Source: Macrostomum hystrix (Eukaryota > Animalia > Platyhelminthes). Taken from it: a stretch of 64,000 nucleotides of DNA. The translations under genes were made by a program, and so were the position numbers. The DNA is taken from assembly GCA_950097015.1 (NCBI GenBank), contig CATNEN010000038.1, forward strand, positions 11,036,001-11,100,000, written 5' to 3'. Shown piece after piece: positions 35,001 through 56,079 of this stretch (its first letter is position 1; each line of letters opens with the position of its first letter). The notes under the pieces are model-generated. The model did no database searches and was not told where the DNA came from. It saw only the letters and a list, made by a program, of their open reading frames with translations.

Positions 35001-38000
35001 CACTATCCATGATCCACTATCCATCACCCACAATTCATCACTCACTATCCATCATCCACTATCCATAATCCGCTATCCATCATCCCCTATCCATAATCCG
35101 CTATCCATCATCCACTATCCATAATCCGCTATCCATCATCCATTGTCCATCATCCACTATCCATCACCCACTATCCATCATCCACAATCCATCATCCACA
35201 ATCATCATCCACAATCCATCATCCACAACCCATCATCCACTATTTATTATCCACTATCCATCATCCTCTATCCATCATCCACTATTTATTATCCACTATC
35301 TATCACCCACTATCCATCATCCACTATCCAACATCCACTATTCATCATCCACTATCCATCATCCACTATCCATCACCCACTATCCGTCATTCACTATCCG
35401 TTGTTCACTATCCATAATTCGCTATCCATCATCCCCTATCCATAATCCGCTATCCATCATCCCCTATCCATAATCCGCTATCCATCATCCACTATCCATA
35501 ATCCGCTATCCATCATCCATTGTCCATCATCCACTATCCATCACCCACTATCCATCATCCACAATCCATCATCCACAATCATCATCCACAATCCATCATC
35601 CACAATCCATCATCCACTATTTATTATCCACCATCTATCATCCACTATCCATCATCCACTATTTATTATCCACTATCTATCATCCACTATCCATCATCCA
35701 CAATCCATCATCCACTATCCATCATCCACTATCCATCATCCACTATCCATCATCCACTATCCAACATCCACTATCCATCATCCACTATCCATCATCCACT
35801 ATCCATCATCCACTATCCATCATCCACTATCCATCAACCACTATTTATTATCCACCATCTATCATCCACTATCCATCATCCACTATGCATCATCCACTAT
35901 CCATCATCCACTATCCATCATTCACTATCCATCATCCACTATCCATCATTCACTATCCATCATCCACTATCCATCATCCACTATCCGTCATTCACTATCC
36001 ATCATCCACTATCCATCATCCACTATCCATCATTCACTATCCATCATCCACTATCCATCATCCACTATCCATCATTCACTATCCATCATTCACTATCCAT
36101 CATCCACTATCCATCATCCACTATCCATCATTCACTATCCATCATCCACTATCCATCATTCACTATCCATCATCCACTATCCATCATCCACTATCCGTCA
36201 TTCACTATCCGTTGTTCACTATCCATCATCGATAGCAAATTTTCACTATTCACTAATTAATTTTCCCCAAAGCTTTATCTACTAATCCAATATTCACAAC
36301 TGCTCACCGGCCTCCTTCTTTGGAGCAGCAGTCTTTGACAAAGGCTCCTCGGGAACTGAATGAAAAAAAGCAGCAAAAATAGCATTAATAAATAGTAAAA
36401 AACTGATTAGCTATGACTCAAATAGAGAGCTCATCGCCCTCTTACCTGGCTCCTCGATTTTCTTCGCGGCTGCCGGCCTTTTCGGTTCCGGCGGCAGCTC
36501 GGACAGAAGCAGGGGAGCTGAGAAACAAAATGCGGAATATATGCTGAATAATACTACTAGCCAGCTGGTAGTAGTATAAGTAGCAAAAGTAGAGAATTCC
36601 GCTTACCAACTTCCTTCTTAGGCGCAACTGTCGCCGTTAGAGACTCCTCAACAATGGGAACGTCTGGTGGAACGACAGTTTTCGGTTTCAGTTTTTTACA
36701 ATTGAGCAAAAAAAGTTACAACTACAACTAAGATTCGGATCATTCCTCACCCGACTCCACTTTCGCTGCCGGTTTCTTCTCAATGGGCTTCTCAGCTGCC
36801 GCTTGCTGGCGCTTCTGTTCTTCTTTCTTGGCTGAGAAGGAAAATGAGAATGAGAGTGAGAATGAAGACTCTTTCTCATTCATCAACTAAACCTGTCATG
36901 CCATCTTACCTTCCTCCTCCTCGGCCTTCTTCCGCTCCATTTCAACGTACTCAGCCAGTGGCTTGGCTAAAAATTAAAAAAAATGTTGCAGACATTTCTA
37001 ATTTCGTAACTCTCATTATCCATACAAAAGTACATTCTTACCGCTGTATCTTGGCGGTGCGTAGACCTTTCCAACCTCTTCTTCCACGACTGAAGGCGCT
37101 GAAATTTATTGCAAAGTTTGAGGTGTGAAATTCGTCTTAAACTGGGCTGGATGAGAGGTGTGAAATTCGTCTTAAACTGGGCTGGATGAGAGGTGTGAAA
37201 TTCGTCTTAAACTGGGCTGGATGAGAGGTGTGAAATTCATCTTAAACTGGGCTGGATGAGAGGTGTGAAATTCATCTTAAACTGGGCTGGATGAGAGGTG
37301 TGAAATTCATCTTAAACTGGGCTGGATGAGAGGTGTGAAATTCGTCGGAAACTGCTCTGGATGAGAGGCGTATAATTCGTCTTAAACTGCTCTGGATGAG
37401 AGGTGTGAAATTCGTCTAAAACTGGGCTGGATGAGAGGTGTGAAATTCGTCTTAAACTGGGCTGGATGAGAGGTGTGAAATTCATCTTAAACTGGGCTGG
37501 ATGAGAGGTGTGAAATTCGTCGGAAACTGCTCTGGATGAGAGGCGTATAATTCGTCTTAAACTGGGCTGGATGAGAGGCGTGTAATTCGTCGGAAACTGC
37601 TCTGGATGAGAGGCGTGTAATTCGTCGGAAACTGCTCTGGATGAGAGGCGTATAATTCGTCTTAAACTGGGCTGGATGAGAGGTGTGAAATTCGTCTTAA
37701 ACTGGGCTGGATGAGAGGTGTGAAATTCATCTTAAACTGGGCTGGATGAGAGGTGTGAAATTCGTCTTAAACTGGGCTGGATGAGAGGTGTGAAATTCAT
37801 CTTAAACTGGGCTGGATGAGAGGTGTGAAATTCATCTAAAACTGGGCTGGATGAGAGGTGTGAAATTCATCTTAAACTGGGCTGGATGAGAGGTGTGAAA
37901 TTCATCTTAAACTGGGCTGGATGAGAGGTGTGAAATTCGTCTTAAACTGGGCTGGATGAGAGGTGTGAAATTCATCTTAAACTGGGCTGGATGAGAGGTG

Positions 38001-41000
38001 TGAAATTCATCTAAAACTGGGCTGGATGAGAGGTGTGAAATTCGTCTTAAACTGGGCTGGATGAGAGGTGTGAAATTCGTCTTAAACTGGGCTGGATGAG
38101 AGGTGTGAAATTCATCTTAAACTGGGCTGGATGAGAGGTGTGAAATTCGTCGGAAACTGCTCTGGATGAGAGGCGTATAATTCGTCTTAAACTGGGCTGG
38201 ATGAGAGGTGTGAAATTCATCTTAAACTGGGTTGGATGAGAGGTGTGAAATTCGTCAGAAACTGGACCGGATTAGTTGTGAAAAACTCACCGCTCTCATT
38301 ATCGGCGGCTTTGATCTTTCCAATTGGCTCCTCATTTGGCTGCGACTTAGGCGGAGCTGAAAGCAATAAGAACTTTTGAATTTTATATACTACTTAAAGT
38401 AGGAATGTTTGAAAATAGACCCGAAGCTAAGTAACATGCACTAAACTTGACGCACCGCTGTGCTGCGAAGCAGACTTTGTCTGACCGATGGATTCCTCGG
38501 CCAGAGGTCCGTCAGCTTCTGCAATATTAGTGTCAGTAACATCATATATATACTTTTTTACGAGCATATTTCGCTATTAAATTTGAGTAAGAGTTGAGAC
38601 AACCTGACCTTGCTCAACAGAGGGCTCGCTGAGAACGCTGAGGAAGTCCTCGATCAGTTTCTCCTTCTCCGACTTTGGCATGGCTTTCTCCTCTTCCTCG
38701 GCCGGCTTCTTTGGCTTTGGAGGCTCTGAAGATTGGTTGAAGTCAAAGCCTTGTAAAGTAAGCACTGGTTCTTGAAAGCGCCGGTTTTGAGAACACTGGT
38801 TATGAGAACACCGATTTTAAGAGCACCGGTTATGAGAACATCATTTTTGAGAACACCGGTTCTGAGAACACCAGTTCTGAGAACACCGGTTCTGAGAACA
38901 CCAGTTCTGAGAACACCGGTTCTGAGAACACCAGTTCTGAGAACACCGGTTCTGAGAACACCAGTTCTGAGAACACCGGTTCAGAGAACACCGGTTCAGA
39001 GAACACCGGTTCAGAGAACACCGGTTCTGAGAACACCAGTTCTGAGAACACCGGTTCAGAGAACACCGGTTCAGAGAACACCGGTTCTGAGAACACCGGT
39101 TCAGAGAACACCGGTTCTGAGAACACCGGTTCTGAGAACACCAGTTCTGAGAACACCGGTTCTGAGAACATCGATTCTGAGAACATCGATTTTAAGAATA
39201 CCGGTTCTGAGAAAAGCGATTCTGAGAACACCGGTTGTGAGAACACCAGTTCTGAGAACACCGGTTCTGAGAACACCGGTTTTGAGAACACCGGTTCTGA
39301 GAACACCGGTTCTGAGAACACCGGTTCTAAGAACACCGGTTCAGAGAACACCGGTTCTGAGAACACCGATTCTGAGAACATCGATTCTGAGAACATCGAT
39401 TCTGAGAACACCGATTCTGAGAACATCGATTCTGAGAACATCGATTCTGAGAACATCGATTTTAAGAATACCGGTTCTGAGAAAAGCGATTCTGAGAACA
39501 CCCGTTGTGAGAACACCAGTTCTGAGAACACCGGTTCTGAGAACACAGGTTTTGAGAACAACGGTTCTGAGAACACCGGTTCTGAGAACACCGGTTCTAA
39601 GAACACCGGTTCAGAGAACACCGTTTCTGAGAACACCGATTCTGAGAACATCGATTCTGAGAACATCGATTTTAAGAATACCGGTTCTGAGAAAAGCGAT
39701 TCTGAGAACACCGGTTGTGAGAACACCAGTTCTGAGAACACCGGTTTTGAGAACACCGGTTTTGAGAACACCGGTTCTGAGAACACCGGTTCTGAGAACA
39801 CCGGTTCTGAGAACACCGGTTCAGAGAACACCGGTTCAGAGAACACCGGTTCAGAGAACACTGGTTCTGAGAACACCGGTTCAGAGAACACCGGTTCAGA
39901 GAACACCGGTTCTGAGAACACCGGTTCTGAGAACACCGGTTCTGAGAACACCGGTTCTGAGAACACCGGTTCTGAGAACACCGGTTCTGAGAAAACCGGT
40001 TCAGAAAACACCGGTTCAGAGAACACCGGTTCAGAGAACACCGGTTCTGAGAACACCTGTTGTTAAGAACACTGATTCTTGTAAAAGACAGTTCTGAGAA
40101 CACCGGTCCTAAAAGTTCTCACCTTCCACAGTGAGTCTGGCACTAGAGCTGATTTTGCCGAAAGCGTTGCTGAATTCCACGGACACCTCGCCTTGGTCAG
40201 CCTTTGTCAAGCGCAGAAGGCGAAGTGTAGCGAGTCCGGCTGAGTACACCAGCTGGTAATTGCGGCTGGTGGACACTGCACGACCGGCAACGCGCCATTC
40301 AACGCTGACTGGCTCGCTGCCGGATATTTTGGCGCGAAATTCCACGCACTCGGACACTAGGCCCGTCATTGGCGACAGAGGCGACACAATCTTGGGCGCC
40401 TCGCCCGGCTTTGTCTGGGGAGCTGGGATGGTTGGCGATTTTCAAATATTTTTTATTATGAAAGTTTTAGTTTACAGTATGAAGGATTTATGGATCTAAA
40501 AGAAGGGAACCTTCGATGAATCTAGTATTCAAGGACTCTGGGATTTGAGAAATTTGAGACCTAAAAAATCTAAAATTTGGGACAACTTTGATCATGATTT
40601 GTAAAAAAATGCCAGATCTGGAAAATTTGTGATTTAGGAAATCTGGGATTTAGGAAATCTGGATTTAGGAAATCTGGATTTAGGAAATCTGGATTTAGGA
40701 AATCTGGGATTTAGGAAATCTGGGATTTAGGAAATCTGGATTTAGGAAATCTAGGATTTGGGAAATCTGGGATTTAGGAAATCTGGGATTTAGGAAATCT
40801 GAGATCTTAGAAATTGGGGATACGATTTTCCCAAATCCGAGATCCTAAAATCTTTATTTCTATGTGAGCAATCTGGGATTTAAGAGAAATTTGAGTCTAT
40901 AATTCGGTGTATAAAAATGTCGGGCTCTGGGGCTTCAGGAAACAATCAAATAAATGTGGGATTTAAGAATCGTGAGTTTATTGGAATCGGAAATTCCTAG

Positions 41001-41601
41001 ATCTAGAAATAGTCATCCTTCAATATTCAAAGTCGCACCTTTCAGGTTGAGGGTAACTGAGGCGTTTGCCTCCCCTCCTGCGGTGCGGATGACGCAGTTG
41101 TACATGCCATTGTCCGAGTTGTTCAACTGTACAAAATGAGCAAGAAAATCGAGCGCGCTTGATAGAGATTCTTTTTTTACTAGAGAATTTTTTTAGAAGA
41201 ATACAACCTTCCCATCCCGTTTCCCACAATTCCCAAATCCCACAATTCCCAAATCCCACAATTCCCAAATCCCACAATTCCCAAATCCCACAATTCCCAA
41301 ATCCCACAATTCCCAAATCCCACAACTCACAAATCCCACAATTCACAAATCCCAAATCCCACTATTCCCACATCCCACAAATCCCAAATCCCACAGTGTC
41401 TCTTTGGGTTATTCCATTCCGATCCTATCCGGTGGCTGTTGCTGTGAAGATTTTTCACTGCCTAGCTGGTGTAGTGAAATCCCGGGATGAAAATAACAGC
41501 CAGGAATGGAGGGTGTGAGAGCGGGAGCAGCGGGGGGTTATATGGCGAGGGCGGCCGATAGCCCGAGGATATCCGTGAGCACACGTGCTCAGACAGGAGC
41601 C

Positions 41602-41636
<35 letters not shown>

Positions 41637-44381
41637 CGATAGAAGACCTGCGGCGCAAGATGAGACGACGGGTGGGTCCGCGGCAGCGGCCAGCAGCAGC
41701 AGCAGCAGCTTAGATAAGCTCAGAGGCCTACTCAATCAACACGCGTCCATGAGTAGATCTCGACATGAGAGACGAGGGTTGGAGAGGACGGGGGAGAGGG
41801 ATGAAGCGCGCTGGGCAGGCACCCGGCCATCCAAGTCCATTGCGGAAGAAAAAATATTCCAGGGACTCTCGCTGCTGCTGCTGCTGCTCTTCGCTCTCTC
41901 TCTTGCTCTCGTCTGTCTCGCATTTCACAGGGCCGCGAGCCAGCACTGGCCGGACTTGTGTGTGTCTGCGTGTGGTAGGGGCGTTGTTGACTGGACGGTG
42001 AGTGAGCCGAGGCCCTGATGGGAAATGGGAAGTGACAGTGGGCAAGAATGGCGTGGAGCAGGAGGAGGAGGAAGAGGTGGTGGTGGCGGGGTTGGAGAGT
42101 GGAGACAGTGGTTTGAGAGCTGGCACGAGGAGAAGAGGAGACCTTGGGCGGAGGAGGTGGGTGGGTGGGCTTCGCCAGGGGCCACTCTTGGACCGCTCCA
42201 GATTTATCGATTGAGCCGGCTGCTGCTGCTGCTGCTGCTGCTGCTACCGCCGCTGCTGGAAGACCCTGGGGGCTAAGAACGGGAGAAGAAGAGAGAGATG
42301 GCGAAGAGCCGAGGCCACATTGCGGCGATGGCCCCGAGGTGGGAGGCTGGAAGATGGGGATAACGGGACTCAGGCGGAACTTGGGGTGGCCGACCCGAGA
42401 GCTGCTCATAGAGTGCTCATAGAGAGAGAGGAAGAGATTTTTCTGCCATCTGGATACGGTTGCGTGGCAGTCTGGTTCTTTTTTTCTACCTGAAACTTCG
42501 CACCCCAGATCCTGATGTCGCACACATTGTTTTGAAATAGCTCGTATATATTTAAAAAATCAAGGAAAAATTCTGTTTTAATTTCATTTAGGACCTCTGG
42601 CAGTGGGACTTCTTTGCAAACTTGTTTAATCCTAACCGGACAATGGTAGTTGGCAGGCAGAAGCAGAGCTGGGGATCATCTTGTCCTTGCCGAGGGGACG
42701 CATTAGGAAGAGGACGTGGCTGCACAGCATGACTAGCGGTGCTGCCCCCAGCTTAGTGCTGGCTGAAGCCCTAGAGAAGGGATTGAGAACTGGGGCGGTG
42801 GGTGGGCAGAATGGGTTGAGGCGTGCCGGCGGCGGCAGCTTCAGTGGCGTCTGTCGAGGCCACATGCAGTTTTTGACGCGAGGGAGAAATTGTCCCTTCG
42901 GTGGGTGGGAGTTGGGGTTAGGAGTGGGAAGCGGGGAAGCGGAGGGCGTGGAAATGGGAGCGGCTGGGGTGCAGTGGCGAGAGGGTCAGGCTGGGCAAAA
43001 AGGGAGCGGCCAGAGAGGTGGGGCCACCCAGGAAGGGAAGAGGAAAGGCGGGAGAGGAGCGGGCGGGTGCTAGACCAGGCTAAAGGCCAGCAAGAAGGCA
43101 GTCAAGTTTCGCACGGTGAGGACAGACTAAAATATAGGGATCGGCCTCTTCGCCTGCCCGGACTAAAGAGACGACTCGAGACCAAAGCCGAGGCCCAAAA
43201 TCCTCAAGCAGGCATCGGACGACAGCATCCTTCGAGAGCGACTCAGTCACAATGTCTGCTAAGCCGGATTCCGCTTGCGACGGTTGCGGCGCCGGCTCTG
43301 CAGGGGCCAATCAGGAGGCGGGGCCGCACCACCTGGGCAGCGCTGCCACTTTGGCGGAGCTGCGCCGACTGCTCGAGTCGCGTCTCGGCCTGGCGCCGGG
43401 AAGTGCGGAGCTCCGTCTGGAGCGTCTGGAGCGGGCGTCTCGGGAGGGTGGCGCCTCTCGCGAGGGCTGCCCAGTGGCAAAGTGGATCGTCCGCCGACGT
43501 CAGGTGGAACCGGAGCGCTTCCTCGCCCTCGTTCGGCAACGTCAGCGGCATACCTGCGACTCGGCCGTGGTCGCTGTGGCCATGGTGTGCTGGGAGGGCG
43601 TGCCAGTACACCTGGCCGACTACCTGTTTGGCTACCTGCGGGCGGAACTTCCGCGAGCCGGCATACCTAGCGAACGCCGCTGCTCGGCTAACGAGTCGCG
43701 CACCTGCGCCTGCCAGGGCTTCGACCCGGACTCCGGCGGTGCCATCTATAGCTTCGGCTGCGCCTGGAGCCTGTTTCACAATGCCTGCAAATTCGCCAGA
43801 ACGCGCGGCGCAGCTCGCAAATTCCGGCTACGGAGCGTCGAAACGGAGCCTGGCGTGGCGCGCGGCCTCAACTGCCTGGCGGACGCGGCGGGCCGCCTTC
43901 TAGCCACCGCCGCTCCAGTTGCCTTCGCCAACCAGACGCGACACTCGGCCGTGGCCGCTGACTGCCGGCTCGGCTCAGCGGAGACTCCGCCAGGCCGACG
44001 ACCGTTCAGCGGTGCCACTGTGGCGTTGGACTTCTGCGCGCACTCGCACAAGGAGCCGGCCCTGGTTGAAGGCGGCTGCAGTGTGGTGGTGGCTCTTTGC
44101 CGGCGGAGCGACTGGCCCGACGAGCAGCTGCACGTCTTCACTAACTACACCCTGGGCGACACGGACGAGTTCGGCTCGGCTGACGGGCAGCAAAGAAAGT
44201 TTGAAACTGGCGAGCTGCACGAGTTGAAGGCTTTTCCAAGAGTGGCTCGACTGAGGGGCGCGCCTGCTGAGTCGACGGGACTCTTCGCCATGACTTCGGC
44301 CAGAAAGAGAACCCTGAGAATGCAGCCAACGCAACCGCCGCCGCCCCCACCGCAACCTCCGACACAATTCAATCCACCGCT

Positions 44382-44428
<47 letters not shown>

Positions 44429-47400
44429 AGATGGCTCAGCTGTCGGCAACTGTCGCTTCGGAGGACGGCTCACCGGGGAGCATCGACAGCGGCATCGAGT
44501 CGGTGAAGAGCAACAACCAGAGCCCCTTCAAGGAGGAGCCTGCGACTACCGAGTCATCTGTCAAGCTTCTGCCACCGATATCGTCCTGGTTTAGAAAGTC
44601 ACCGCCGAGGTGGGAGCCGCAGCAGCTCGAGCCGCAGCACTACAAGCAGCAGGTGCAGCTGCAGCGCCAGTTGATGCTGCAAAAGCAGCAGCAGCAACAG
44701 AAGCTTCAAATGCTACAAAGGCAGCAGGAGCAGCTAAAGCAGCAACCGTCACCGCAGCTGCCATCGCCGCCGCAGCAGCCCCCGCAGGTTCAACAGATAA
44801 AGGAAGCTCATAAACCGCATGATGATTTTACACGGCATGTCGAAAATGTGGAGCATTCAAATCAAGAACATCGACAAGAACAGCAGCAACATCAGCAGCA
44901 GCAGCAACCCGTACATCCGCAGCCTTCTCAAACAGGATTCACAGCAGGTGCACAGAGTCATTCGGTAAGACAGCCGTCATCGGTGCGTGACCATCAACAA
45001 TGGCGCCACAACCAGCAGCGGTACTCGGCCTACTACAGCCACCAGCACAGCCAGTACCCGTGGCCTCAGCAGCACCAGTATCCGTATTATTCCTACTATC
45101 GAAACTATCAAAGCGGATACGAACGCTATCCTTATTATTCAAATAGTGGCCAGCAACAGTCAGCTTTCGGGTGCCAATGCTGTCAACACTCGGGCTATTT
45201 CCGGCACCAGCATCAGCACCCTCACCAGCACCAGCACCAGCACCAGCTCCAGCAACAGGCCCAGTCGCGGAGTCAGCCAGGTCCAGGCGACTGGGAGTTC
45301 ACCACCGACAGTTTGGAGGCCTTTCGCGACTCAGAAAGCGGCGGCGTTGCGGTGGCCCTGTCCCACGGTGCTGTGCTCATCGAGGCTGGCAAACGCGAGC
45401 CTCGAGCTGTGACTGCGGTTCGGCGGCCGAACCGCTGGGACCCGTCCAGCATCCGGGTGGCCTTCTTTCAGCACAAGAATCTGCGCTACGCCAAGCACGG
45501 CTTCGCTGAATACGCTGAGAAGATGCGTCTGCTGCGACAGCGCAGGCAGGGCCAGACGGCCGTCACGGAAGGTGCCGATTTCGATGACGACGGTGAAGCG
45601 GCTTGAAAAGAAATTCTTACCATTTATGGAACGAATCTCTGCTTCCTGTACATCCTCTATCCCAGCTGTTGCATGAGCTGGATGATGACATCGTGAGTCC
45701 CTTTCCGTGTCCTTAATCGTGATTTAACTAGTGTCATGAAGTACACATTTTTTCTAGCGCGTGTTAACAAAGCAGACGTTATAATTTTTTTGCTGGAAGA
45801 TTTCTTGTGTTTATTGTAACAGACATTTATTGTTCACAGCGCTCAATCAACTTTGTCGTTTTCGAGTAGAATGAACTGTTCGTTAACAGGCCCCCAAATA
45901 CACAATCGCCTGTTGGACAACAATAGTTTTTTGCTCAACTTGAAACACACTTCATCCCGGTTTCAACAGCTTACTTAATTCTGTGTTTTATGCGAACCTG
46001 AGGGGTGGCTTTCACATGACCGAAACTTCACAACGCCGAAAATTCTTGCACTGTCCTTCACAAGACCGAAACTTCATAAGACCCAAATTTCACAAAGCCG
46101 AAAAGTAAAAATGCAGACCCCTTCACAAGGCGTTGTAAAATTTCGGTCTTGTGAAGCCACCCAAGCTGAGCGATCGAATTAAAAACCTGACATCATATTC
46201 CAGCAACCCTACTCGCGATTTGTTGGTGAGTAACATAGTAAGGTATTCAAGCAATTTTATGTACATGGCGAAGCCTACCTCGTCGATCTCGAGAACGGCA
46301 ACAAAGTTTTCACCGTCTCGCGCCATATCCATAAAGTAGCGTCCTCCGTTGCCAATGGCAACGCCCTCGTGGGTCCACTTGGCCTCCGGTCGACTGAGCG
46401 ACTTCACGTGGATCTCGATGACAACCACTCGGCCATTGTTTTGCACCTTGATTAGTGGCTTGCCAACCAGCTGTGGTGCTGGCTCCTGCTGCTGCTGCTG
46501 CTCCTGCTGCTGCTCGGGCCTGCGGAGAGAATGGAGGAGCCAAATCTTATTTTTAACAGTCGAGAAACCTCAGGGGATTTCAAATATCCACATTTCTCTT
46601 TTTTGTGTGACTCCTAAAGTAATCAACCGATCGCAATTTCTGCCCACAAAATTTTATAATGTATCCATGTCGGCTATCATTGTTGACTATATTGTATTGA
46701 TTTTACAGCTTATTTCTGCACTTTTGAGCCGATATGGATTCGCCAAACAGGATCTTCGACGAGAACCGCAGGCAGTGGGTATTTGAAATACCGTGAAAAA
46801 TGGCATGGTCCTTCTACTGTTAAAACACTGAATTCTCTATAGTAGTAGAATAGAATTTCAGAGAACAGGACTCACTGCTGCATCTGCATGTTGATGCTGA
46901 CGGTAGCGTTGGCCTCTCCAAGGGCGCTCTTGGCCACAACGCGGTACTGCCCGCCATCCTCGGCTGTGAAATTCTGCCATCAAGTGGTTCGTTTTTTATG
47001 TTTTTTGTGTCATGCTCAAATAAATTGTCATTAAAAAGGAATGCAACCTCATGCTGGATCGTTAGAACGAGCTTTGACGAGGTTTTAAAAAACAAAATTT
47101 TAAATGATATGTACTATCAGGAGGACTGCGGGCAGTGGCACATCATTTAGTGACACTAGACCCGCAGCCAGCGAGGAGGCAATTCTGCCCATTCAGCTGA
47201 CTCCCGAGAACACACGCACACAGATACTGTACGCAGACACACGCTCACACAGGGCGAAACACAGGCTGTGTACATCTTTCTTGACTTTCTCATCACAAGG
47301 CAGTGTACACTTTCACTGTGCCTTGTAGGTTGGCCCTCAAGGACGGGAATTGCAGGATAAGCCCCCAAGTGAGCGTTAGATCTGCTTTAAGCTAAGCAGA

Positions 47401-49386
47401 TAGTTATCATGTTGAGCAACTCACAGAAATAAGCAGCACTAGGGTGTACTCCATGCCATTGTTGGTGGTAGAAAGTGTGTACCGCCCGCCGGAGGTCATG
47501 ACGGCCTCGTGGCGGTACCAGGTGAACAAGGGCTCCGGCTCGCCGCGGCAGATGCAGGTGATGCGAATGTTGTCGCCCTCTCTCTCGATCCTCGGCTTCT
47601 CCGTGAACGTCGGCGGCGTCCCAGCCGGCTGCGGAGCTGTTGAAAGAAGAATTTTGTTAGAACCGGCAGGTTATCTTCCACCTTCAGGGAGCACACACAA
47701 TTCTTTCATGATAAGTGCAGTCACCATTTTAGCCACAAACCACAACACATTCGAAGAAAACAGCAAATATAATTACAACAGCGTTTCTTTTAAAACTGAT
47801 AAATATACAACTGGATATACTAAGCCTGTGCTTAAGTGTGTGACACTTGGACTTTTGTTTCAATAAAGCAATCGACAGATTTCAAGTTCCCAATGCCAAC
47901 AGGCCAAGGCTGAACAGCTCGAAGCAAACTCTAAGTCACCTTAAATGCACCTTCAATGGACCTCAAGTGCCTCATGCGCATTCAGCGCCCCTTTGGTACC
48001 TCCTGTGCACCAGCCGTGCCGCAATTTTGAGCCTTACGTTCACGTTTTGTGCATCTCCAAAGCCCCTTACGCACCTTTACTGCATCTTACACTGCAAGCC
48101 AATCAAAATAGAGAAATCCCCTAATACCTGACCACTTCACCTATTGCAGACCTTTCATGCCTGTTTCAAAAGCTCTAATTATTTCAAATTATTTTTAAAA
48201 CACACACGAAATAAGCCGTCAAAGCTTTTGTGCACCGCTTTTGTGCAGTTCAGGTGCATGACGAAGCTCACCCTGACTCATGTTGAGTGTGAGGCTGGCG
48301 TTGCTCTCTCCGGCCTCGTTCACAACGTTGCAGCGATAGGAGCCGCTGTCCTCCGGGGCGGGTGACGCAATCACCAGGAGCAGCACGTAGGAGTCGGGCT
48401 GTGGTCCCGCGCTGCAGCTGATGCTGATCTTGCCGCCCGAGGTTATCTCCTGGTCGCTGCGGAACCAGGTGATTCGTGGCATCGGCTGCGCCTCGATGAC
48501 GCATTTCATCTCGATATTGTCGCCGACCTGAGCGATCGACGGCTTCTCTAGGAACTTCGGCGGTTTGCCGGTTCTGAGATTTCCAGATTTCGTTGGACAT
48601 ATCGCGTTGTATTTTTTATCAATTGATGTTTTAGGAAATGAAAACAAAACCATTACTAATTGATTGCACCTGCCCTAATTGGGCTCGATGTGCAGTCGAC
48701 AGCACCCATACTGGTACTAGTACCCATTTTACAGTTGGGTGAACTGAAGCAATGCAGAGTTAAGTGTCTTGCTAATGGCCACAAATTTTTCCACTTGAAT
48801 CTGGAATCGAACCCCCGACCTTCAAGTCATTCGTCCGACGCTCTAACCACAAGGCTACAACCCCCCTCTTTTAAGAAAGCAGATCAGTGAAGATTTACCT
48901 CTTCGCAGCTCCGATGTTCAGACTGATGGTAGCTGTTGTCTCGCCAAGCGGACCCTTGGCGAACACCTTGTATTCTCCGCCATCATTAGCGGTGACACCT
49001 TTGATCTCCAGGCTCAGCAGGTGGTTCTGTCCGGAGCTCTGGCAGCTGATGGCGTATCGGTCGCTATTTTCGATGGTCTGGCCAGCCTTGGACCAGGTGA
49101 TTTCCGGCAGCGGGTCAGCCAACAGGTTGCATTCAAACACAATGGACTTGCCGCGTTGCTTGATGGAAGGCTTCGTTGTGAACTGCGGCCTTGTGCCGCC
49201 ACCTCGGGCTGTGGTATTCAGTCGGTGTTTTGTTTATCCCCCGCATTATCCCTAAGCAAACCCATTTCCCTAAGCTCATATTCTATGAGCCTTTTAGGGA
49301 GCTACAAGTAGCATGCCCCAGTGTCCCCAGGCAAATCCCCTGATAATTTGAGCCAATCAATTTGGCAAATTTCGCTCACCCGACAT
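8027..49386 (-). CDS. unc-22: Twitchin/unc-22/projectin-family giant muscle protein kinase, multi-exon (49 coding exons, about 4,800 aa in a hand-built model)
   Basis: ATG TCG G|gtgag at 49386-49380 splices to 49208 giving MSARGGTRPQFTTKPSIKQ, a twitchin-like first Ig. Exons with GT-AG boundaries and consistent phases: 49380-49386, 48899-49208, 48272-48573, 47425-47636, 46876-46973, 46279-46519, 41039-41126, 40123-40422, 18 micro-exons in 31715-38725, 30061-30210, 29735-29977, 29526-29602, 29307-29441, 28052-28209, 27658-27910, 27281-27580, 26924-27077, 26439-26834, 25501-26029, 24975-25406, 23230-24886, 21706-23160, 19953-21620, 17392-17521, 15441-15918, 13719-15155, 11114-11396, 10663-10762, 10296-10579, 8464-9574, 8163-8341, 8027-8092. 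The sum is 14,391 nt, divisible by 3. Ig/Fn3 repeats (WxPPxxDGGSxI, YEFRVxAxNxAG), kinase, regulatory tail and C-terminal Igs occur in twitchin order. Confidence 0.93.
8464..9574 (-). CDS. unc-22: Twitchin exon: post-kinase Ig domains and Ser/Pro-rich linker
   Basis: ORF 8456..9574: I-set Ig (LSCTVDGKPAPTVSWFKDG...DAGRYTV) and further Ig domains; acceptor at 9575, donor gtgag at 8463. Confidence 0.88.
9625..9780 (-). mobile_element. SINE family A, degenerate fragment
   Basis: ccagcgagaagcaaatatgcccattt, ctgactttc...cgtcaggc and aaagggcgtagattgtgcaacaagc align in order with the 10797-11093 copy. Confidence 0.55.
10663..10762 (-). CDS. unc-22: Twitchin exon: C-terminal autoinhibitory tail
   Basis: PNWWGILGIARLADFGSLRRLQMKQFEVYETSF resembles the twitchin regulatory tail (GRxxxxSSLR type); phases fit the neighbouring exons. 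Confidence 0.8.
10797..11093 (-). mobile_element. SINE family A copy
   Basis: Collinear similarity to 32467-32797 (ggcacatcatttggtgac, gcgaggaggc, caagcccccaagcctt, gagctcagggacct). Confidence 0.75.
11114..11396 (-). CDS. unc-22: Twitchin exon: kinase C-lobe end
   Basis: LSGLSPFLGNDSYETLANVRRGDWEF...EAKDFIKSLL...RLTVHEALEHVWL; acceptor at 11397-11398, donor gtgag at 11113. Confidence 0.92.
11572..13050 (-). mobile_element. IS630/Tc1/mariner-superfamily DNA transposon, about 1.48 kb, in twitchin intron 11397-13718
   Basis: About 140-bp terminal inverted repeats (about 11572-11711 and 12911-13050, few mismatches), flanked by TA, enclosing a transposase ORF. The exact end is ambiguous by 2 bp because of TATA at both ends. 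Confidence 0.92.
11810..12778 (-). CDS. IS630/Tc1-like transposase (HTH plus DDE), probably with an in-frame internal deletion
   Basis: ATG at 12778 (MNRGPYHPVS); HTH WKQLAEILGIKRKTAKTIV; GRPKK; IFLDEFG, IFDGARAH and LPPYSPYLNPTE motifs. Confidence 0.88.
   Translation of the reverse strand: MNRGPYHPVSNEDRRRLALAVEEGRDWKQLAEILGIKRKTAKTIVDTYVQTGRIEKFPSAGGRPKKLQEQQIESIIEFLEANPSATLQMMRNHLMQLGNEGQLPHVSTISRALDKQLVTLKLARQITFDWNDPVVKAARCEYAQWMMNEGHDRNQIFLDEFGLNLWTARTQGWAYRGQLMEGGFRAQNFADFLVELDVLVEAEWVAIFDGARAHLQVPGLSPQHSTYQLPPYSPYLNPTERAGSSLKASVKRALSVPAIQHELSNRQAAAAANLTLHAWRMHILKREVEAALHVITQEKCQQWTNHTVGYYGRCLDYEDILN
13441..13660 (-). mobile_element. SINE family B copy
   Basis: gcatctgaaggctgcgtacggctgttcagtccatggactg is identical to the 50290 copy; same tRNA-like head (ggaatcgaacccctgaccttcaagtc). 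Confidence 0.72.
13719..15155 (-). CDS. unc-22: Twitchin exon: Ig, Fn3 and most of the Ser/Thr kinase domain
   Basis: LGSGAFGVV, VAKFI, HLDIKPEN, DFG, TAEFAAPE and DMWAVGV motifs are all intact, preceded by the NYDKFY linker typical of twitchin kinase. Confidence 0.95.
15170..15377 (+). mobile_element. SINE family A copy, 5'-truncated, opposite orientation
   Basis: gcttgtcgtgaaatttacgccc...ctcaggattcagcggaatgggcagaattgcctcctcgctggctacgggtcta matches the reverse complement of the other copies. Confidence 0.72.
16040..16926. repeat. 22-bp minisatellite (CAAGAGAACATCACTAGCATAT)n
   Basis: Tandem array in twitchin intron 15919-17391. Confidence 0.95.
17754..19721 (+). CDS. Thr-rich mucin-like type I membrane protein, single exon, nested antisense in twitchin intron 17522-19952
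   Basis: 655-aa ORF with a hydrophobic N-terminal signal-like segment (VFIIAMMLASAALLTQLPCARG), about 550 aa of Thr/Pro-rich sequence with varied codons, a C-terminal TM-like segment (AAAFIVPVVLGAGIAFVMYKIIILGL) and a very short tail. Confidence 0.75.
   Translation: MTLLLCKHSKRGTTTGKIADVFIIAMMLASAALLTQLPCARGFTSAALHLYGSTTTEEMTTSEETTQTTTPTTTTTTQTITTTKTPIETTATTLTTATMITEITNSTTVSSTVPTTTTLPTTAATSPAETTTTNPTTTSTTTPTTSSTTLTTTTMTTPTTTTVTTPTTATTIDPTTTTTTTPTTTSMTTPTTNAATASAETTTTNPTTTTTNTQTTTSTTTPTTTTTTTAATETTTTTQTITATTSPAETTTTNPTTTTTTTPTTSSTTLTTTTMTTPTTTTVTTPTTATTIDPTTTTTTTPTTTSMTTPTTNAATASAETTTTNPTTTTTNTLATTSTTTQTTTTTATAPTETTTTNPTTTTTTTTPPETTTTNPTTTTTNTLATTSTTTPTTTTTTTAATETTTTTQTITATTTPAETTTTTTTTPTTTSTTTPTTTLTTPTTTSTTTSTTTTATTPSTTTMADLTTTTPTTTTTATTTLTETPTSTPTTATTTTPTTTATSTVTTITATTPTTTTPTTPTTTTTPTQTTTTTTTLTTTTASTPTTTASTNPTATTLTTERGTTTTTPTTTAKTTPTTFTTMSTLGTQTTQSSASLSTTLSAAEIKKEIQRQNAIAYQQESVNAAAFIVPVVLGAGIAFVMYKIIILGLRNGL
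19953..24886 (-). CDS. unc-22: Twitchin central Fn3/Ig super-repeat exons (23230-24886, 21706-23160, 19953-21620)
   Basis: ORFs 23215..24789, 21649..23160 and 19899..21656 encode Fn3-Fn3-Ig repeats; short GT-AG introns at 23161-23229 and 21621-21705. Confidence 0.95.
30245..30610. repeat. 34-bp minisatellite (AACCTCTGACACCTGAGGTAATTGGGTAAGGCTT)n
   Basis: Tandem array with a degenerate right end. Confidence 0.9.
31715..38725 (-). CDS. unc-22: Array of 18 phase-1/phase-1 micro-exons (48-123 nt) encoding a PEVK-like Pro/Glu/Ala/Lys-rich segment of twitchin
   Basis: Exons 38609-38725, 38456-38518, 38291-38356, 37042-37098, 36910-36966, 36751-36831, 36607-36663, 36446-36517, 36308-36355, 34766-34813, 34627-34677, 33871-33921, 33725-33772, 33226-33279, 33096-33149, 32867-32917, 32298-32357, 31715-31837. 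All have AG/GT boundaries, are multiples of 3 and are stop-free. Many encode variants of APxEEPVSKxAAPKKEA. Confidence 0.85.
32467..32797 (-). mobile_element. tRNA-derived SINE (family A), copy with intact head
   Basis: Head TGGCAGAGCGGTCTAACGCG...GAGCTCGATTCC (A/B boxes); body shared with copies near 10800, 15170, 47120 and 9625. Confidence 0.75.
33316..33645. repeat. 15-bp minisatellite (TAAACCCTTCATCTC)n
   Basis: Tandem array. Confidence 0.92.
34010..34592. repeat. Degenerate 15-19-bp pyrimidine-rich minisatellite (CCCTTAATCTCACCTCT-like)
   Basis: Tandem array whose unit resembles the 1-1200 array. Confidence 0.85.
34990..36230. repeat. 14-bp minisatellite (ATCCATCATCCACT)n
   Basis: Tandem array with an internal block duplication. 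Confidence 0.92.
37120..38272. repeat. 35-bp minisatellite (GAGGTGTGAAATTCGTCTTAAACTGGGCTGGATGA)n
   Basis: Head-to-tail array with no spacers. Confidence 0.95.
38780..40108. repeat. 15-bp minisatellite (GAGAACACCGGTTCT)n
   Basis: Tandem array filling almost all of intron 38726-40122. Confidence 0.95.
40630..40802. repeat. 15-16-bp minisatellite (GGGATTTAGGAAATCT)n
   Basis: Tandem array. Confidence 0.88.
41222..41395. repeat. 16-bp minisatellite (CCCACAATTCCCAAAT)n
   Basis: Tandem array. Confidence 0.88.
43252..45606 (+). CDS. TET: TET-family (TET/JBP 2OG-Fe dioxygenase fold) protein with a degenerate active site, nested antisense in twitchin intron 41127-46278
   Basis: Ordered TET motifs: GCPVAKWIVRR, RHTC, RRCSANESRTCACQG, YSFGCAWS...CKFAR, CRLG...RPFSG...LDFCAHSHKE, EQLHV, a long low-complexity insert, GGVAVALSHGAVLIE and FFQHKNL...KHG. 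Uninterrupted 784-codon ORF. Upstream exons cannot be excluded: the frame is open back to an AG at 43136-43137. Confidence 0.93.
47117..47368 (-). mobile_element. SINE family A copy, 5'-truncated
   Basis: ggcacatcatttagtgacactagacccgcagccagcgaggaggcaattctgcccatt...aagcccccaag is shared with the other copies. Confidence 0.75.
48657..48866 (-). mobile_element. SINE family B copy (internally deleted)
   Basis: Shares cccattttaca...ggtgaactgaagcaatgc and ggaatcgaacccccgaccttcaagtc...ccgacgctctaa with 50290-50566. Confidence 0.72.
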
Positions 49387-50567: not shown

Positions 50568-51890
50568 AGAGTGTCTCACGGGTGTCTCTCTCTGAGTGTC
50601 TCACAGGTGTCTCTCTCTGAGTGTCTCACAGGTGTCTCTCTCTGAGTGTCTCACAGGTGTCTCTCTCTGAGTGTCTCACAGGTGTCTCTCTCTGGCTTTC
50701 TCACAGGTGTCTCTCTCTGAGTGTCTCACAGGTGTCTCTCTCTGAGTGTCTCACAGGTGTCTCTCTCTGAGTGTCTCACAGGTGTCTCTCTCTGAGTGTC
50801 TCACAGGTCTCTCTCTGAGTGTCTCACGGGTGTCTCTCTCTGAGTGTCTCACGGGTGTCTCTCTCTGAGTGTCTCACAGGTGTCTCTCTCTGAGTGTCTC
50901 ACGGGTGTCTCTCTCTGAGTGTCTCACAGGTGTCTCTCTCTGAGTGTCTCACAGGTGTCTCTCTCTGAGTGTCTCACAGGTGTCTCTCTCTGAGTGTCTC
51001 ACGGGTGTCTCTCTCTGAGTGTCTCACAGGTGTCTCTCTCTGAGTGTCCCACAGGTGTCTCTCTCTGAGTGTCTCACAGGTGTCTCTCTCTGAGTGTCTC
51101 ACAGGTGTCTCTCTCTGAGTGTCTCACGGGTGTCTCTCTCTGAGTGTCTCACAGGTGTCTCTCTCTGAGTGTCTCACAGGTGTCTCTCTCTGAGTGTCTC
51201 ACAGGTCTCTCTCTGGCTTTCTCACAGGTGTCTCTCTCTGAGTGTCTCACAGGTGTCTCTCTCTGAGTGTCTCACAGGTGTCTCTCTCTGAGTGTCTCAC
51301 AGGTGTCTCTCTCTGAGTGTCTCACAGGTGTCTCTCTCTGAGTGTCTCACAGGTGTCTCTCTCTGAGTGTCTCACAGGTGTCTCTCTCTGAGTGTCTCAC
51401 AGGTGTCTCTCTCTGAGTGTCTCACAGGTGTCTCTCTCTGAGTGTCTCACAGGTGTCTCTCTCTGAGTGTCTCACAGGTGTCTCTCTCTGAGTGTCTCAC
51501 AGGTGTCTCTCTCTGAGTGTCTCACGGGTGTCTCTCTCTGAGTGTCTCACAGGTGTCTCTCTCTGAGTGTCTGACAGGTGTCTCTCTCTGAGTGTCTCAC
51601 AGGTGTCTCTCTCTGAGTGTCTCACAGGTGTCTCTCTCTGAGTGTCTCACAGGTGTCTCTCTCTGAGTGTCTGACAGGTGTCTCTCTCTGAGTGTCTCAC
51701 AGGTGTCTCTCTCTGAGTGTCTCACAGGTGTCTCTCTCTGAGTGTCTCACGGGTGTCTCTCTCTGAGTGTCTCACAGGTGTCTCTCTCTGAGTGTCTCAC
51801 AGGTGTCTCTCTCTGAGTGTCTCACAGGTGTCTCTCTCTGGCTTTCTCACAGGTGTCTCTCTCTGAGTGTCTCACAGGTGTCTCTCCCTG
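50568..51890. repeat. 25-bp minisatellite (GAGTGTCTCACAGGTGTCTCTCTCT)n
   Basis: Tandem array. Confidence 0.95.
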
Positions 51891-52402
51891 ACGGACTCAC
51901 GGGTTTATTACGATAGGTAAATTGTACAGGTGTCTCTGACCGGTGTATAACTCCTTGCTACTTTTTGATAGTGCGCACAACTGTGTGCAATTCGGAAACT
52001 GATGGGGTGGGCGCGCATGTCAGTCCTGACCTTTCCAGAATTTCCTGCCCGACTAGCTCGACTTTTTTTTACCGTCTGTTCTCCCCTAATGGCAATGGCA
52101 ATCTTCTATGACGCAAATAATGCATGAACAGGGCATTGGCTAGACTGCAGATTATCTTGCAAAATGCGAACACTTCACAGATGCCATCTACAGTAGGATA
52201 TTGATTGTGGGCAGCTGCATTGAAAATATATTTTTTCTTTCGCCGATCAGCAATGTACTTATGTACACTGTAGTATGCTTTTATTATTATCAAAAAATGT
52301 CTAACAGCTGTCTAGAATGGCATAATATCTATACCTGTGTACGAGGCCTGTCTAATGCCTGTCTAACACCTGTCTAACAGGTGATATACCTTTCGAATAG
52401 TG

Positions 52403-53001
52403 GATATGCCTGTCTAACAGGGAATATGGATGTCTAACAGGGAATATGGATGTCTAACAGGGGATATGCCTGTCTAACAGGGAATATGGATGTCTAACAG
52501 GGAATATGCCTGTCTAACAGGGAATATGCCTGTCTAACAGGGAAATAGCCTGTCTAACAGGGGATATGCCTGTCTAACAGGGAAATTGCCTGTCTAACAG
52601 GGGATATGCCTGTCTAACAGGGAATATGCCTGTCTAACAGGGAAATAGCCTGTCTAACAGGGAATATGCCTGTCTAACAGGGAATATGCCTGTCTAACAG
52701 GGAATATGGATGTCTAACAGGGAATATGGATGTCTAACAGGGAATATGCCTGTCAAACAGGTAATATGCCTGTCTAACAGGGAATATGCCTGTCTAACAG
52801 GGAATATGCCTGTCTAACAGGGAATATGTATGTCTAACAGGGAATATGCCTGTCTAACAGGGAATATGCCTGTCTAACAGGGAATATGAATGTCTAACAG
52901 GGAATATGCCTGTCTAACAGGGGATATGCCTGTCTAACAGGGAAATTGCCTGTCTAACAGGGGATATGCCTGTCTAACAGGGAACATGCCTGTCTAACAG
53001 G
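52403..53001. repeat. 20-bp minisatellite (GCCTGTCTAACAGGGAATAT)n
   Basis: Tandem array. Confidence 0.95.
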
Positions 53002-53564
53002 TAAAGCATTAAATATTGCAGCTCATGTCTGCATACCACCAGCTCCATGTAGGCATCGCACAGAAAAAACCAACCCTTTAAGCGGAAAATAACGGGAATG
53101 AAGTCAGAGAGAGACTGTGCAGGCCTGTACACCTCCTGGCTAGCGCGCCAACGGAAAACTGCCCGAATCTCTCTATCTTTATAGCTCGTATGCAAGTAAA
53201 CACAAGCATCTGTCTGTCAGGAATCTTTCGATCCGCCGTGACATTTCTGCTTCCCCATTTTTACATAGCTTAGTCGGCGAGCAAACACGGACAGCCAAAT
53301 TTGGGAAGAAGTTTTCAGGATCTGGCTCGTTTCCTAACCTTTTCGCTTCCTAATTTTGAAAGTAAAGATAATCCAAATGTGGTGTAGAAAGTAATAGGTT
53401 TCTCAAAAAATAGTTATAATACTCCTCTCGCTTACTAACGAGTAGTCATGCGACTAATAAAAACATAAGCATATTATTTGTCTAATTGTACTGCTTCTAT
53501 TGTCAGATTTTAAAAAAATCTAGAAAATCTACATCTTAAAATATGATTAAGTAGAGCCTAGACG

Positions 53565-55451
53565 AATAGAGACAGAATGCATAGATACAGAATGGACAGA
53601 GACAGAATGGATAGAGACAGAATGGATAGAGACAGAATGGATAGAGACAGAATGGATAGAGACAGAATGGATAGAGACAGAATGGATAGAGACAGAATGG
53701 ATAGAGACAGAATGGATAGAGACAGAATGGATAGAGACAGAATGGATAGAGACAGAATGGATAGAGACAGAATGGATAGAGACAGAATGCATAGACACAG
53801 AATGGATAGAGACAGAATGCATAGAGACAGAATGGATAGAGACAGAATGGATAGAGACAGAATGGATAGAGACAGAATGGATAGAGACAGAATGCATAGA
53901 GACAGAATGGATAGAGACAGAATGGATAGAGACAGAATGGATAGAGACAGAATGGATAGAGACAGAATGGATAGAGACAGAATGCATAGAGACAGAATGG
54001 ATAGAGACAGGATGCATAGAGACAGAATGGATAGAGCCAGAATGGATAGAGACAGAACGGATAGAGACAGGATGCATAGAGATAGAATGCATAGAGACAA
54101 AATGGATAGAGACAGAATGGATAGAGATAGAATGCATAGAGACAGAATGGATAGAGACAGAATGGAAATAGACAGACAGAATGGATAGAGACAGACAGAA
54201 TGGATAGAGACAGGCAGAATAGATAGAGACAGACAGAATGGATAGAGATAGAATGCATAGAGACAGAATGGATAGAGACAGAATGGATAGAGACAGACAG
54301 AATGGATGGAGACAGACAGAATGGATAGAGACAGGCAGAATGGATAGAGACAGACAGAATGGATAGAGACAGACAGAATGGATAGAGACAGGCAGAATGG
54401 ATAGAGACAGACAGAATGGATAGAGACAGGCAGAATGGATAGAGACAGGCAGAATGGATAGAGACAGGCAGAATGGATAGAGACAGGCAGAATGGATAGA
54501 GACAGGCAGAATGGATAGAGACAGGCAGAATGGATAGAGACAGGCAGAATGGATAGAGACAGGCAGAATGGATAGAGACAGGCAGAATGGATAGAGACAG
54601 GCAGAATGGATAGAGACAGGCAGAATGGATAGAGACAGGCAGAATGGATAGAGACAGACAGAATGGATAGAGACAGACAGAATGGATAGAGACAGGCAGA
54701 ATGGATAGAGACAGACAGAATGGATAGAGACAGGCAGAATGGATAGAGACAGGCAGAATGGATAGAGACAGACAGAATGGATAGAGACAGGCAGAATGGA
54801 TAGAGACAGGCAGAATGGATAGAGACAGACAGAATGGATAGAGACAGACAGAATGGATGGAGACAGACAGAATGGATAGAGACAGGCAGAATGGATAGAG
54901 ACAGGCAGAATGGATAGAGACAGGCAGAATGGATAGAGACAGGCAGAATGGATAGAGACAGGCAGAATGGATAGAGACAGGCAGAATGGATAGAGACAGG
55001 CAGAATGGATAGAGACAGGCAGAATGGATAGAGACAGGCAGAATGGATAGAGACAGGCAGAATGGATAGAGACAGACAGAATGGATAGAGACAGGCAGAA
55101 TGGATAGAGACAGACAGAATGGATAGAGACAGGCAGAATGGATAGAGACAGGCAGAATGGATAGAGACAGGCAGAATGGATAGAGACAGGCAGAATGGAT
55201 AGAGACAGGCAGAATGGATAGAGACAGGCAGAATGGATAGAGACAGGCAGAATGGATAGAGACAGGCAGAATGGATAGAGACAGGCAGAATGGATAGAGA
55301 CAGGCAGAATGGATAGAGACAGGCAGAATGGATAGAGACAGGCAGAATGGATAGAGACAGGCAGAATGGATAGAGACAGGCAGAATGGATAGAGACAGAC
55401 AGAATGGATAGAGACAGGCAGAATGGATAGAGACAGACAGAATGGATAGAG
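53565..55451. repeat. Compound purine-rich minisatellite: 15-bp (ATAGAGACAGAATGG)n switching near 54170-54300 to 19-bp (ATAGAGACAGGCAGAATGG)n
   Basis: Tandem array; the 19-mer is the 15-mer plus a 4-nt (A/G)CAG duplication. Confidence 0.95.
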
Positions 55452-56079
55452 TCTGGATTGACATTGGATTTGGGTGTAAGTCAATCTAGTAATTTGCACT
55501 TCTTAATCAATGTCTATTTCCGCTAATTAGACTTGAGCAAATGAAATGAAAGCAGAGAGTATAGGAAAAGTTTATCAAGTATTTATTGTTGCAGCAAAAT
55601 TAGCTTGAAAGCCGAATTCAGTAGAGCGGAACGGTTTCCTATATATTATATTTGTGTCGCATTGTGCACAACTGAAATGGTTTCAGTTGTCCGAATGTTT
55701 AAATTGGTTTTGTGGATTCATTATTGCCACTCTGGCCTACTAAACAAGTCTGAATAAATAAAGCATTATAACTTTATAGTGCATGTATTTATGATTTGCT
55801 AATGTAAGCGCAAAGCACTTTTACACTAAAGCAATAAGTAGGTCGAAAGTTGCAATATACCAGCTAATGTAATTTAAAATTGAGAACATGTGCATTATGA
55901 AGATTATGGATTAAGAACATTGTGAGATTTGGAAGATTAGGAATAATGTCGATAAATGATTAGTGCGATAAGGAATTAGGAAGATTGTGTAGGGTGAAGA
56001 TTGAGAATTTTGAAGATTAGGGAACGGAAGATATGGAATGGGAGGAAATGGGATTGGGAAGGAATGGGATTGGGAAAAT

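Follow-up and report, generated by a model that had tools for sequence, protein, structure and literature searches.

The window analyzed here is a stretch of 64,000 nucleotides from the flatworm Macrostomum hystrix (assembly GCA_950097015.1; 220 Mb in 42 contigs), positions 11036001-11100000 of contig CATNEN010000038.1 (C38 below). At 43252..45606 on the forward strand it contains a TET gene copy that we refer to as window TET; the other TET of this genome, located on contig C1, is referred to as C1 TET. Window TET probably is a genuine TET paralog, apparently transcribed and preserved by selection, that is no longer able to hold catalytic Fe(II), i.e., a TET pseudoenzyme; we put the probability of this reading at about 0.68. 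With the 2-His-1-carboxylate triad short of its third ligand, the protein would not oxidize 5-methylcytosine (5mC) or any other substrate. It is predicted to fold still, with most of the residues that contact DNA in human TET2 kept, and it would act non-catalytically.

Gene structure and active-site residues

Window TET is a single unbroken open reading frame (ORF) of 784 codons plus stop that begins with an ATG, as the original prediction had described it. The chance of 784 stop-free codons arising from the base composition is about 4e-10, and the longest open run in the remaining five frames is 216 codons. The Pfam domain Tet_JBP (PF12851) matched with 81.5 bits (E = 5.3e-23, profile positions 2-164 of 164), which exceeds the gathering cut-off of 34.9 bits and places the protein in the TET/JBP family. 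In a phmmer search against the PDB, human TET2 was the only protein matched (E = 7.5e-92), in two blocks comprising amino acids (aa) 22-341 and 676-761. The architecture is split: a low-complexity insert separates the N-terminal block, made up of a Cys-rich domain and half of the double-stranded beta-helix (DSBH), from the second DSBH half. The catalytic domain of human TET2 (PDB 4NM6, 5D9Y, 7NE3, and 9HXV) has the same two-block layout without a CXXC domain and is about 40-44% identical to window TET. The Pfam domain search returned no zf-CXXC match on contigs C38 or C1. The features of the gene are listed below; residue numbers of TET family positions are those of human TET2, with the TET2 crystal construct as the reference row.

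43132..45901, forward strand: approximate mRNA, apparently without an intron (the span of two contigs from run X2, described below, interrupted only at skipped simple repeats)
43252..45606, forward strand: coding sequence, 784 codons plus stop, TET2-type without a CXXC domain (ORF, Pfam, phmmer)
43273..43290, forward strand: N-terminal Cys pair ACDGCG (C9, C12), which aligns with the CxC of TET2 (SCRC) and has the spacing CxxC
43309..44286, forward strand: Cys-rich domain and N-terminal DSBH half, aa 20-345 (alignment; confident core of the structure model)
43744..43746, forward strand: I165 at TET2 S1284
44035..44055, forward strand: CAHSHKE, aa 262-268, with H264 (Zn) and H266 (Fe) kept and E268 (GAG at 44053) at the Fe-binding Asp
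44287..45276, forward strand: low-complexity insert, aa 346-675, predicted to be disordered (Q 22%, P 16%, S 10%; composition and structure model)
44374-44430, forward strand: Pro run inside the insert (sequence)
44470..44514, forward strand: insert motif 1, SPGSIDSGIESVKSN, common to C1 TET and M. lignano TET (SPASIDSGFESIKSN)
44566..44601, forward strand: insert motif 2, LLPPISSWFRKS, common to C1 TET and M. lignano TET only
45277..45546, forward strand: C-terminal DSBH half, aa 676-765 (alignment; structure model)
45403..45405, forward strand: R718 (CGA) at the distal Fe(II) His, TET2 H1881
45448..45456, forward strand: S733-I734-R735 at TET2 R1896-I-S1898 (alignment; S733 is AGC at 45448, R735 is CGG at 45454)

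For comparison, 89 other representative TETs were drawn from an HMMER scan that covered 1.84 billion cluster representatives, and window TET was aligned with them over both domains. The columns that differ in the catalytic pocket are as follows.

D1384: D in 89/89 other TETs; E in window TET
H1881: H in 89/89 other TETs, and in C1 TET and M. lignano TET; R in window TET
R1896: R in 89/89 other TETs; S in window TET
S1898: S in 84/89 other TETs; R in window TET
S1284: S in 88/89 other TETs, and in C1 TET; I in window TET
N1387: N in 87/89 other TETs; L in window TET
H1386: H in 81/89 other TETs; A in window TET
Y1902: Y in 88/89 other TETs; F in window TET

In TET2, Fe(II) is bound by H1382, D1384, and H1881, and R1261 contacts 2-oxoglutarate (2OG; PMC6244454). 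In place of the HxD...H triad, window TET reads H266-x-E268 ... R718. The 2OG-binding Arg and S1898 are likewise gone, with S733 and R735 at their positions, and together with the change of S1284 to I this remodels the 2OG pocket. The patient-derived TET2 mutants H1881Q and R1896S serve as catalytically inactive mutants (PMC6317994). In a classification of TET2 mutations, H1881R/Q/N, R1896M/S/G, S1284F, and S1898F abolish activity and keep the structure, and S1284F is among the class Ia (activity-impairing) mutations (PMC6625141). The leukemia mutants H1881R/Q and R1896S/M affect the same positions, and H to R and R to S are the exact substitutions of window TET; however, these mutants are somatic loss-of-function alleles of an enzyme, whereas in window TET the substitutions belong to the germline sequence of a distinct, retained gene.

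The scaffold around the pocket is retained. The conserved Zn-binding Cys and His residues that precede the DSBH are present, and over the whole alignment window TET keeps C1193, C1221, C1263, C1271, C1273, C1289, C1298, C1358, and C1378 as well as H1219, H1380, H1382, H1416, H1868, H1904, and H1912. The sole strongly conserved Cys/His column that is altered is C1374, which is A in window TET (C in 85/89 and V in 4/89 of the others); C1374 probably is not a Zn ligand because four other TETs have V. The N-terminal CxC pair of TET2 is CDGC (aa 9-12), and the segments GCP, HTC, TCAC, CRLG, RRC, EQLH, and KHG are present. Also kept are R1261 and the TET2 DNA contacts R1262, W1291, K1299, R1302, and T1372, to which the above-mentioned H1904 belongs as well; the contact M1293 is L.

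The original prediction had listed D to E (44053), His to Arg (45403), Arg to Ser (45448), and Ser to Arg (45454), and these codons read as it gave them; HMMER reproduced the ungapped alignment on which they were based. The base-pocket changes that it reported, N1387 to L (L271 at 44062) and Y1902 to F (F739 at 45466), were found as well, and its account of a retained Zn scaffold, RRC Arg, and EQLH agrees with our alignment, in which the segments are present and the conserved columns are kept with the exception of C1374. The motif CAHSHKE exists but had been placed at 44041-44055; 44041 begins HSHKE, and the motif occupies 44035-44055.

An AlphaFold2 (AF2) model of window TET was calculated from a 38-row alignment. 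The core is confident, with a predicted local distance difference test (pLDDT) score of 85-97 for most blocks, and the insert is disordered. In Foldseek, the model matched the TET2 structures 4NM6, 7NE3, and 9HXV with E = 1e-32 to 1e-34, a target-normalized template modeling (TM) score of 0.87-0.89, and a root-mean-square deviation of 2.3-2.8 A; the matches to CcTet, CMD1, and NgTET1 were far weaker than those to TET2. The modeled fold is thus TET2-like. The low pLDDT at the HxE loop (about 59) was considered as a sign of disorder specific to this copy and rejected, as the HxD loop of C1 TET dips too (about 54).

The second TET of the genome and the TET of Macrostomum lignano

The genome contains exactly two TET loci, window TET and C1 TET. 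C1 TET is one ORF of 918 codons at C1:5257073-5259829 on the forward strand (L004:7073-9829), and the two proteins are 53-55% identical in each domain. The closest named protein to window TET is Macrostomum lignano BOX15_Mlig025520. Three near-identical M. lignano gene models exist (Mlig025520g1-g3), all of them orthologs of C1 TET. C1 TET and BOX15_Mlig025520g1-g3 are the sister group of window TET, and C1 TET likewise consists of a single-ORF catalytic region and shares the insert motifs. Unlike window TET, C1 TET keeps HxD (CMHAHKD), the distal His (SHAST), S1284, and S1898. It departs from the family in that R1896 is N, N1387 is A, H1386 is F, and Y1902 is F. The full-length M. lignano TET (P0242, 930 aa) reads EAAKHDSHATT...HPTSMSLVFF; HxD...H is kept, R1896 is S, and Y1902 is F. 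In another M. lignano TET model, P0001, the C-terminus is mis-modeled.

Among the 89 other TETs, 132 columns are conserved in at least 95% of the sequences. Window TET is altered in 27 of these and C1 TET in 20, as compared to a median of one per TET. Thirteen of the 132 are altered in both window TET and C1 TET, including R1896, N1387, and Y1902, and the less conserved H1386 (81/89) is changed in both alike. The changes in these conserved columns that are specific to window TET are D1384E, H1881R, S1284I, C1374A, P1419T, and several conservative substitutions (K>R, S>A, M>L, V>A, L>F, A>G, and L>V); S1898R is likewise specific to window TET. The original prediction had counted six pocket losses against an otherwise conserved fold. 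That the fold is kept and the ligands are replaced stands, whereas for R1896, N1387, and Y1902 the losses are not specific to this copy.

All three Macrostomum TETs (window TET, C1 TET, and M. lignano TET) lack the 2OG Arg and have Phe at Y1902. The two copies of M. hystrix are in addition without N1387 and H1386, which contact the cytosine. Judged by the alignment, the loss of the 2OG Arg is older than the duplication that gave rise to window TET and C1 TET, because C1 TET (N) and M. lignano TET (S) are without it too; the shared changes at N1387, H1386, and Y1902 are likewise dated to before the duplication, and the Macrostomum TET clade is aberrant as a whole. By its residues C1 TET is Fe-competent, yet it has no canonical 2OG Arg, and this Arg is absent in two species. 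The loss of the 2OG Arg across the clade, in TETs that keep the Fe triad, may be the biochemically more surprising point.

The tolerance of the clade for this loss bears on the possibility that window TET has remained enzymatic, by way of an unusual metal site or other chemistry. For example, H266 and E268 could be complemented by a ligand from elsewhere, and R735 could bind the C5 carboxylate of 2OG or another acid. HxE is a legitimate variant of the motif that other families of 2OG oxygenases use, and both R1261 and H1416, the latter of which we take to be a further 2OG contact, are kept. R735 lies two residues past the lost Arg and, from strand geometry, would point to the side that R1896 faces; C1 TET and M. 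lignano TET combine HxD...H with the absence of R1896. However, the distal His is the same in all 89 other TETs, and its change kills TET2 (PMC6317994, PMC6625141). Arg cannot coordinate Fe(II), and the aligned strand (KREPRAVTA) shows no evident replacement in the form of a new His, Asp, or Glu. The change of S1284 to I also introduces a bulky side chain at a site for which S1284F was grouped with changes that replace Fe or 2OG ligands or clash with them (PMC6625141). We consider an active window TET unlikely and favor the pseudoenzyme.

The two insert motifs follow the patterns SP(G/A)SIDSG(I/F)ES(V/I)KSN and LPPI(S/A)SWFRKS and are located at aa ~437-451 and ~475-486 of C1 TET. Both were absent from the approximately 240 other TET sequences fetched, and the rest of the insert could not be aligned between window TET and its relatives. 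Motif 1 conforms to the DSGxxS phosphodegron pattern.

Sequence confirmation, duplication age, and constraint

To the region 41800-47500 (5701 letters) we mapped the contigs of four runs. Run X2 belongs to the same study as the probable source, but to a different sample; X5 and X6 belong to a second study (2020); and X9 is described below. The X2 contigs cover 43132-44371 and 44437-45901, and their depth is flat, 12.8-14.8 across 43137-45810, and 0 at 42182-42945 and 46002-46192. They differ from the window in one letter at 43249, upstream of the ATG, and in gaps at skipped simple repeats. The X5 and X6 pieces are small, confined to 43434-45797, and show 0 differences. The C-terminal strand was recovered with 0 differences in X2 (45265-45901) and in X6 (45314-45485, which spans the entire strand); the HxE motif was covered by one run only, X2 (43132-44371).

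The original prediction had named an assembly error as the first thing that could undo it. These contigs were obtained independently, and they match the window at both the C-terminal strand and the HxE motif. A separate contig carries 11 differences at 43730-43764 and evidently is the paralog; therefore, the two genes can be distinguished in the reads. With 0 differences over the covered pieces in contigs from three other samples and two studies, and with paralogous reads that are separable, it is highly improbable that the unusual codons are an artefact of assembly or sequencing.

The placement of the contigs suggests that 43132-45901 is an intronless transcript with a 5' untranslated region of about 120 nt, because in three runs the contigs are limited to the gene, as is the case for RNA. 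The contig sets comprise 41-50 Mb, as compared to a genome of 220 Mb. No ATG is present within 43132-43251. Upstream of 43132, 23 X2 letters (43109-43132) did not match and may stem from a spliced leader or from an exon located further upstream; no AG acceptor was found ahead of 43132. Further downstream, three runs have long contigs (1.7, 2.9, and 14.5 kb) that include the 194 nt at 46279-46472 without differences but are otherwise off this stretch; this segment could be an exon of a neighboring spliced gene or a dispersed repeat. Run X9, which is labeled as a different organism (B, 2024), contains a 240-nt contig identical to the window at 43545-43784; it may derive from a very close relative, a mislabeled sample, or carry-over.

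The maximum likelihood tree has the topology (window TET,(C1 TET, M. lignano)), with support of 99 and 99 in the Shimodaira-Hasegawa-like approximate likelihood ratio test. Because window TET is on a long branch, site patterns were checked: at sites where C1 TET and M. lignano TET differ, window TET sides with one at 14 and with the other at 17. Window TET is 53.1% and 53.7% identical to C1 TET and M. lignano TET, respectively, whereas C1 TET and its M. lignano ortholog are 81% identical. Because of the tree, the balanced site patterns, and the equal identities, the sequences place the duplication of window TET and C1 TET before the split of C1 TET from its M. lignano ortholog, i.e., before the species split.

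Following the duplication, the branch to window TET accumulated 1.08 changes per site, as compared to 0.61 + 0.18 = 0.79 for the sister (a ratio of about 1.4). When derived states were counted against the family consensus, window TET had 46 and the sister 22. By these estimates the evolutionary rate of window TET exceeds that of its Fe-competent sister only by a factor of about 1.4-2; for a copy without constraint over that span, a branch several-fold longer would be expected. In the pairwise comparison of window TET and C1 TET, dN is 0.39 and dS is saturated at 2-3, so that dN/dS, at no more than about 0.16-0.19, is an upper bound only. The GC content of the three codon positions is 0.69, 0.50, and 0.705, i.e., the position-dependent pattern of a coding sequence is retained, and most of the above-mentioned changes of window TET in conserved columns are conservative.

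Of the possible single substitutions in window TET, 4.3% would yield a stop. Considering substitutions alone, the probability that the frame remains intact is 0.006 at a neutral divergence of 0.05; with an assumed indel rate, it is below 0.06 at a neutral divergence of 1%. The 2352-nt frame is intact through Pro and Gln runs that are prone to slippage.

These figures bear on the possibility that window TET is a recently disabled copy, i.e., that it was constrained for long, lost its His lately, and does not yet show visible decay. This account would fit the failure to find an ortholog, with only the other paralog among the M. lignano proteins found, the location among minisatellite arrays, and the skewed GC content and amino acid composition. 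However, the active site carries four separate changes (D>E, H>R, S>I, and S>R) and the R718 codon is CGA, which suggests an old remodeling in multiple steps and not a single late event; the frame, as just described, is intact even in its Pro and Gln runs; contigs from three runs fall on the gene; and the insert motifs are retained. We regard a recent loss as improbable. A decaying copy had been the alternative outcome in the original prediction; the contig placement, the old duplication, the moderate branch, the bound on dN/dS, and the intact frame agree instead with a maintained gene.

We searched for orthologs with the whole protein including the N domain, with the N domain alone, with the C-terminal piece alone, and with HMMER over the 1.84 billion representatives. 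Wherever the ortholog searches gave a match, the top one was M. lignano Mlig025520 (54-57% identity), the ortholog of C1 TET; the C-terminal piece alone had no match in the public protein search.

Several points weigh against a maintained pseudoenzyme. No ortholog of window TET was found in the public protein sets searched, a result that does not prove absence, given the length limits and the clustering at 50% identity. Of the two paralogs, only C1 TET has its ortholog among the M. lignano proteins found; window TET may have been lost in M. lignano (or may be unannotated there), and a loss would argue for dispensability. No record identifies the runs as RNA, and the contigs show neither strand nor level. 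The Fe-competent sister itself lacks the otherwise invariant 2OG Arg, and the clade may break the usual rules, so that the residue logic of TET2 may transfer incompletely.

Proposed role, comparison with known systems, and surroundings

As a pseudoenzyme, window TET would occupy nucleic acid sites or partner proteins that it has in common with the active C1 TET, and the conserved insert motifs are a plausible means of this shared targeting. Its role would be that of a competitor or regulator of the C1 TET enzyme, or that of a scaffold. More tentatively, the two Macrostomum TETs could form an enzyme-pseudoenzyme pair in a clade that has moved beyond canonical TET chemistry: the Fe-competent copy would have an altered co-substrate or base specificity, and the dead copy would be its regulatory or targeting subunit via the shared insert motifs. 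We consider this extended version doubtful. In the close relative M. lignano, 5mC is reported to be low, and DNMT1 and DNMT3 are kept (PMC11292947, PMC10658182). In the M. hystrix genome, a C5-DNA-methylase domain was found at at least three loci.

A literature search found no description of a natural TET without Fe ligands; known so far are engineered or somatic catalytic-dead TETs and catalysis-independent TET functions. For Drosophila Tet, both enzymatic-independent and enzymatic-dependent functions have been reported (PMC12560471). In Drosophila Tet and in mammalian TET1 and TET2, the catalytic and the non-catalytic functions reside in a single protein, and the dead versions were made by engineering, whereas window TET would be a separate, natural dead gene. 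With respect to human TET2, window TET differs by D1384E, H1881R, R1896S, S1898R, S1284I, N1387L, H1386A, Y1902F, and the change of CxC to CxxC. Inactive proteins also occur in other families of the 2OG oxygenase superfamily. JARID2, for example, keeps the cupin/DSBH fold, has lost the Fe ligands, and has a non-catalytic role in chromatin; it differs from window TET in its family (JmjC) and its substrate class.

Whether TETs are mainly 5mC oxidizers or scaffolds is debated, and the question has hitherto been approached via engineered catalytic-dead alleles. If our reading is true, a natural, separately encoded, and apparently constrained dead TET, beside a single Fe-competent paralog, would allow the two roles to be separated genetically. 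RNA interference and transgenesis exist for the genus Macrostomum. The loss of the 2OG Arg in all Macrostomum TETs raises the question of how the Fe-competent copy binds its co-substrate and what its substrate is.

The GC content of window TET is 0.63 (0.705 at third codon positions), as compared to 0.49 in the flanks and 0.55 in C1 TET, and the amino acid make-up of window TET deviates from that of the family. GC-biased conversion or a locally biased mutation pattern may account for this.

Within the window, window TET forms an island amid minisatellite arrays, which extend over 30230-41395 and 50569-64000. Examples of these arrays are the following.

38781-40107: minisatellite, 15-nt unit, 88 copies
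50569-51891: minisatellite, 25-nt unit, 53 copies
56055-64000: minisatellite, 16-nt unit, about 502 copies

In several frames, the arrays give rise to spurious long ORFs that have repeat-type Pfam matches. The long ORFs at 38.8-40.1 kb, 53.5-55.5 kb, and 56.6-61.3 kb were considered as genes and rejected as translations of tandem repeats.

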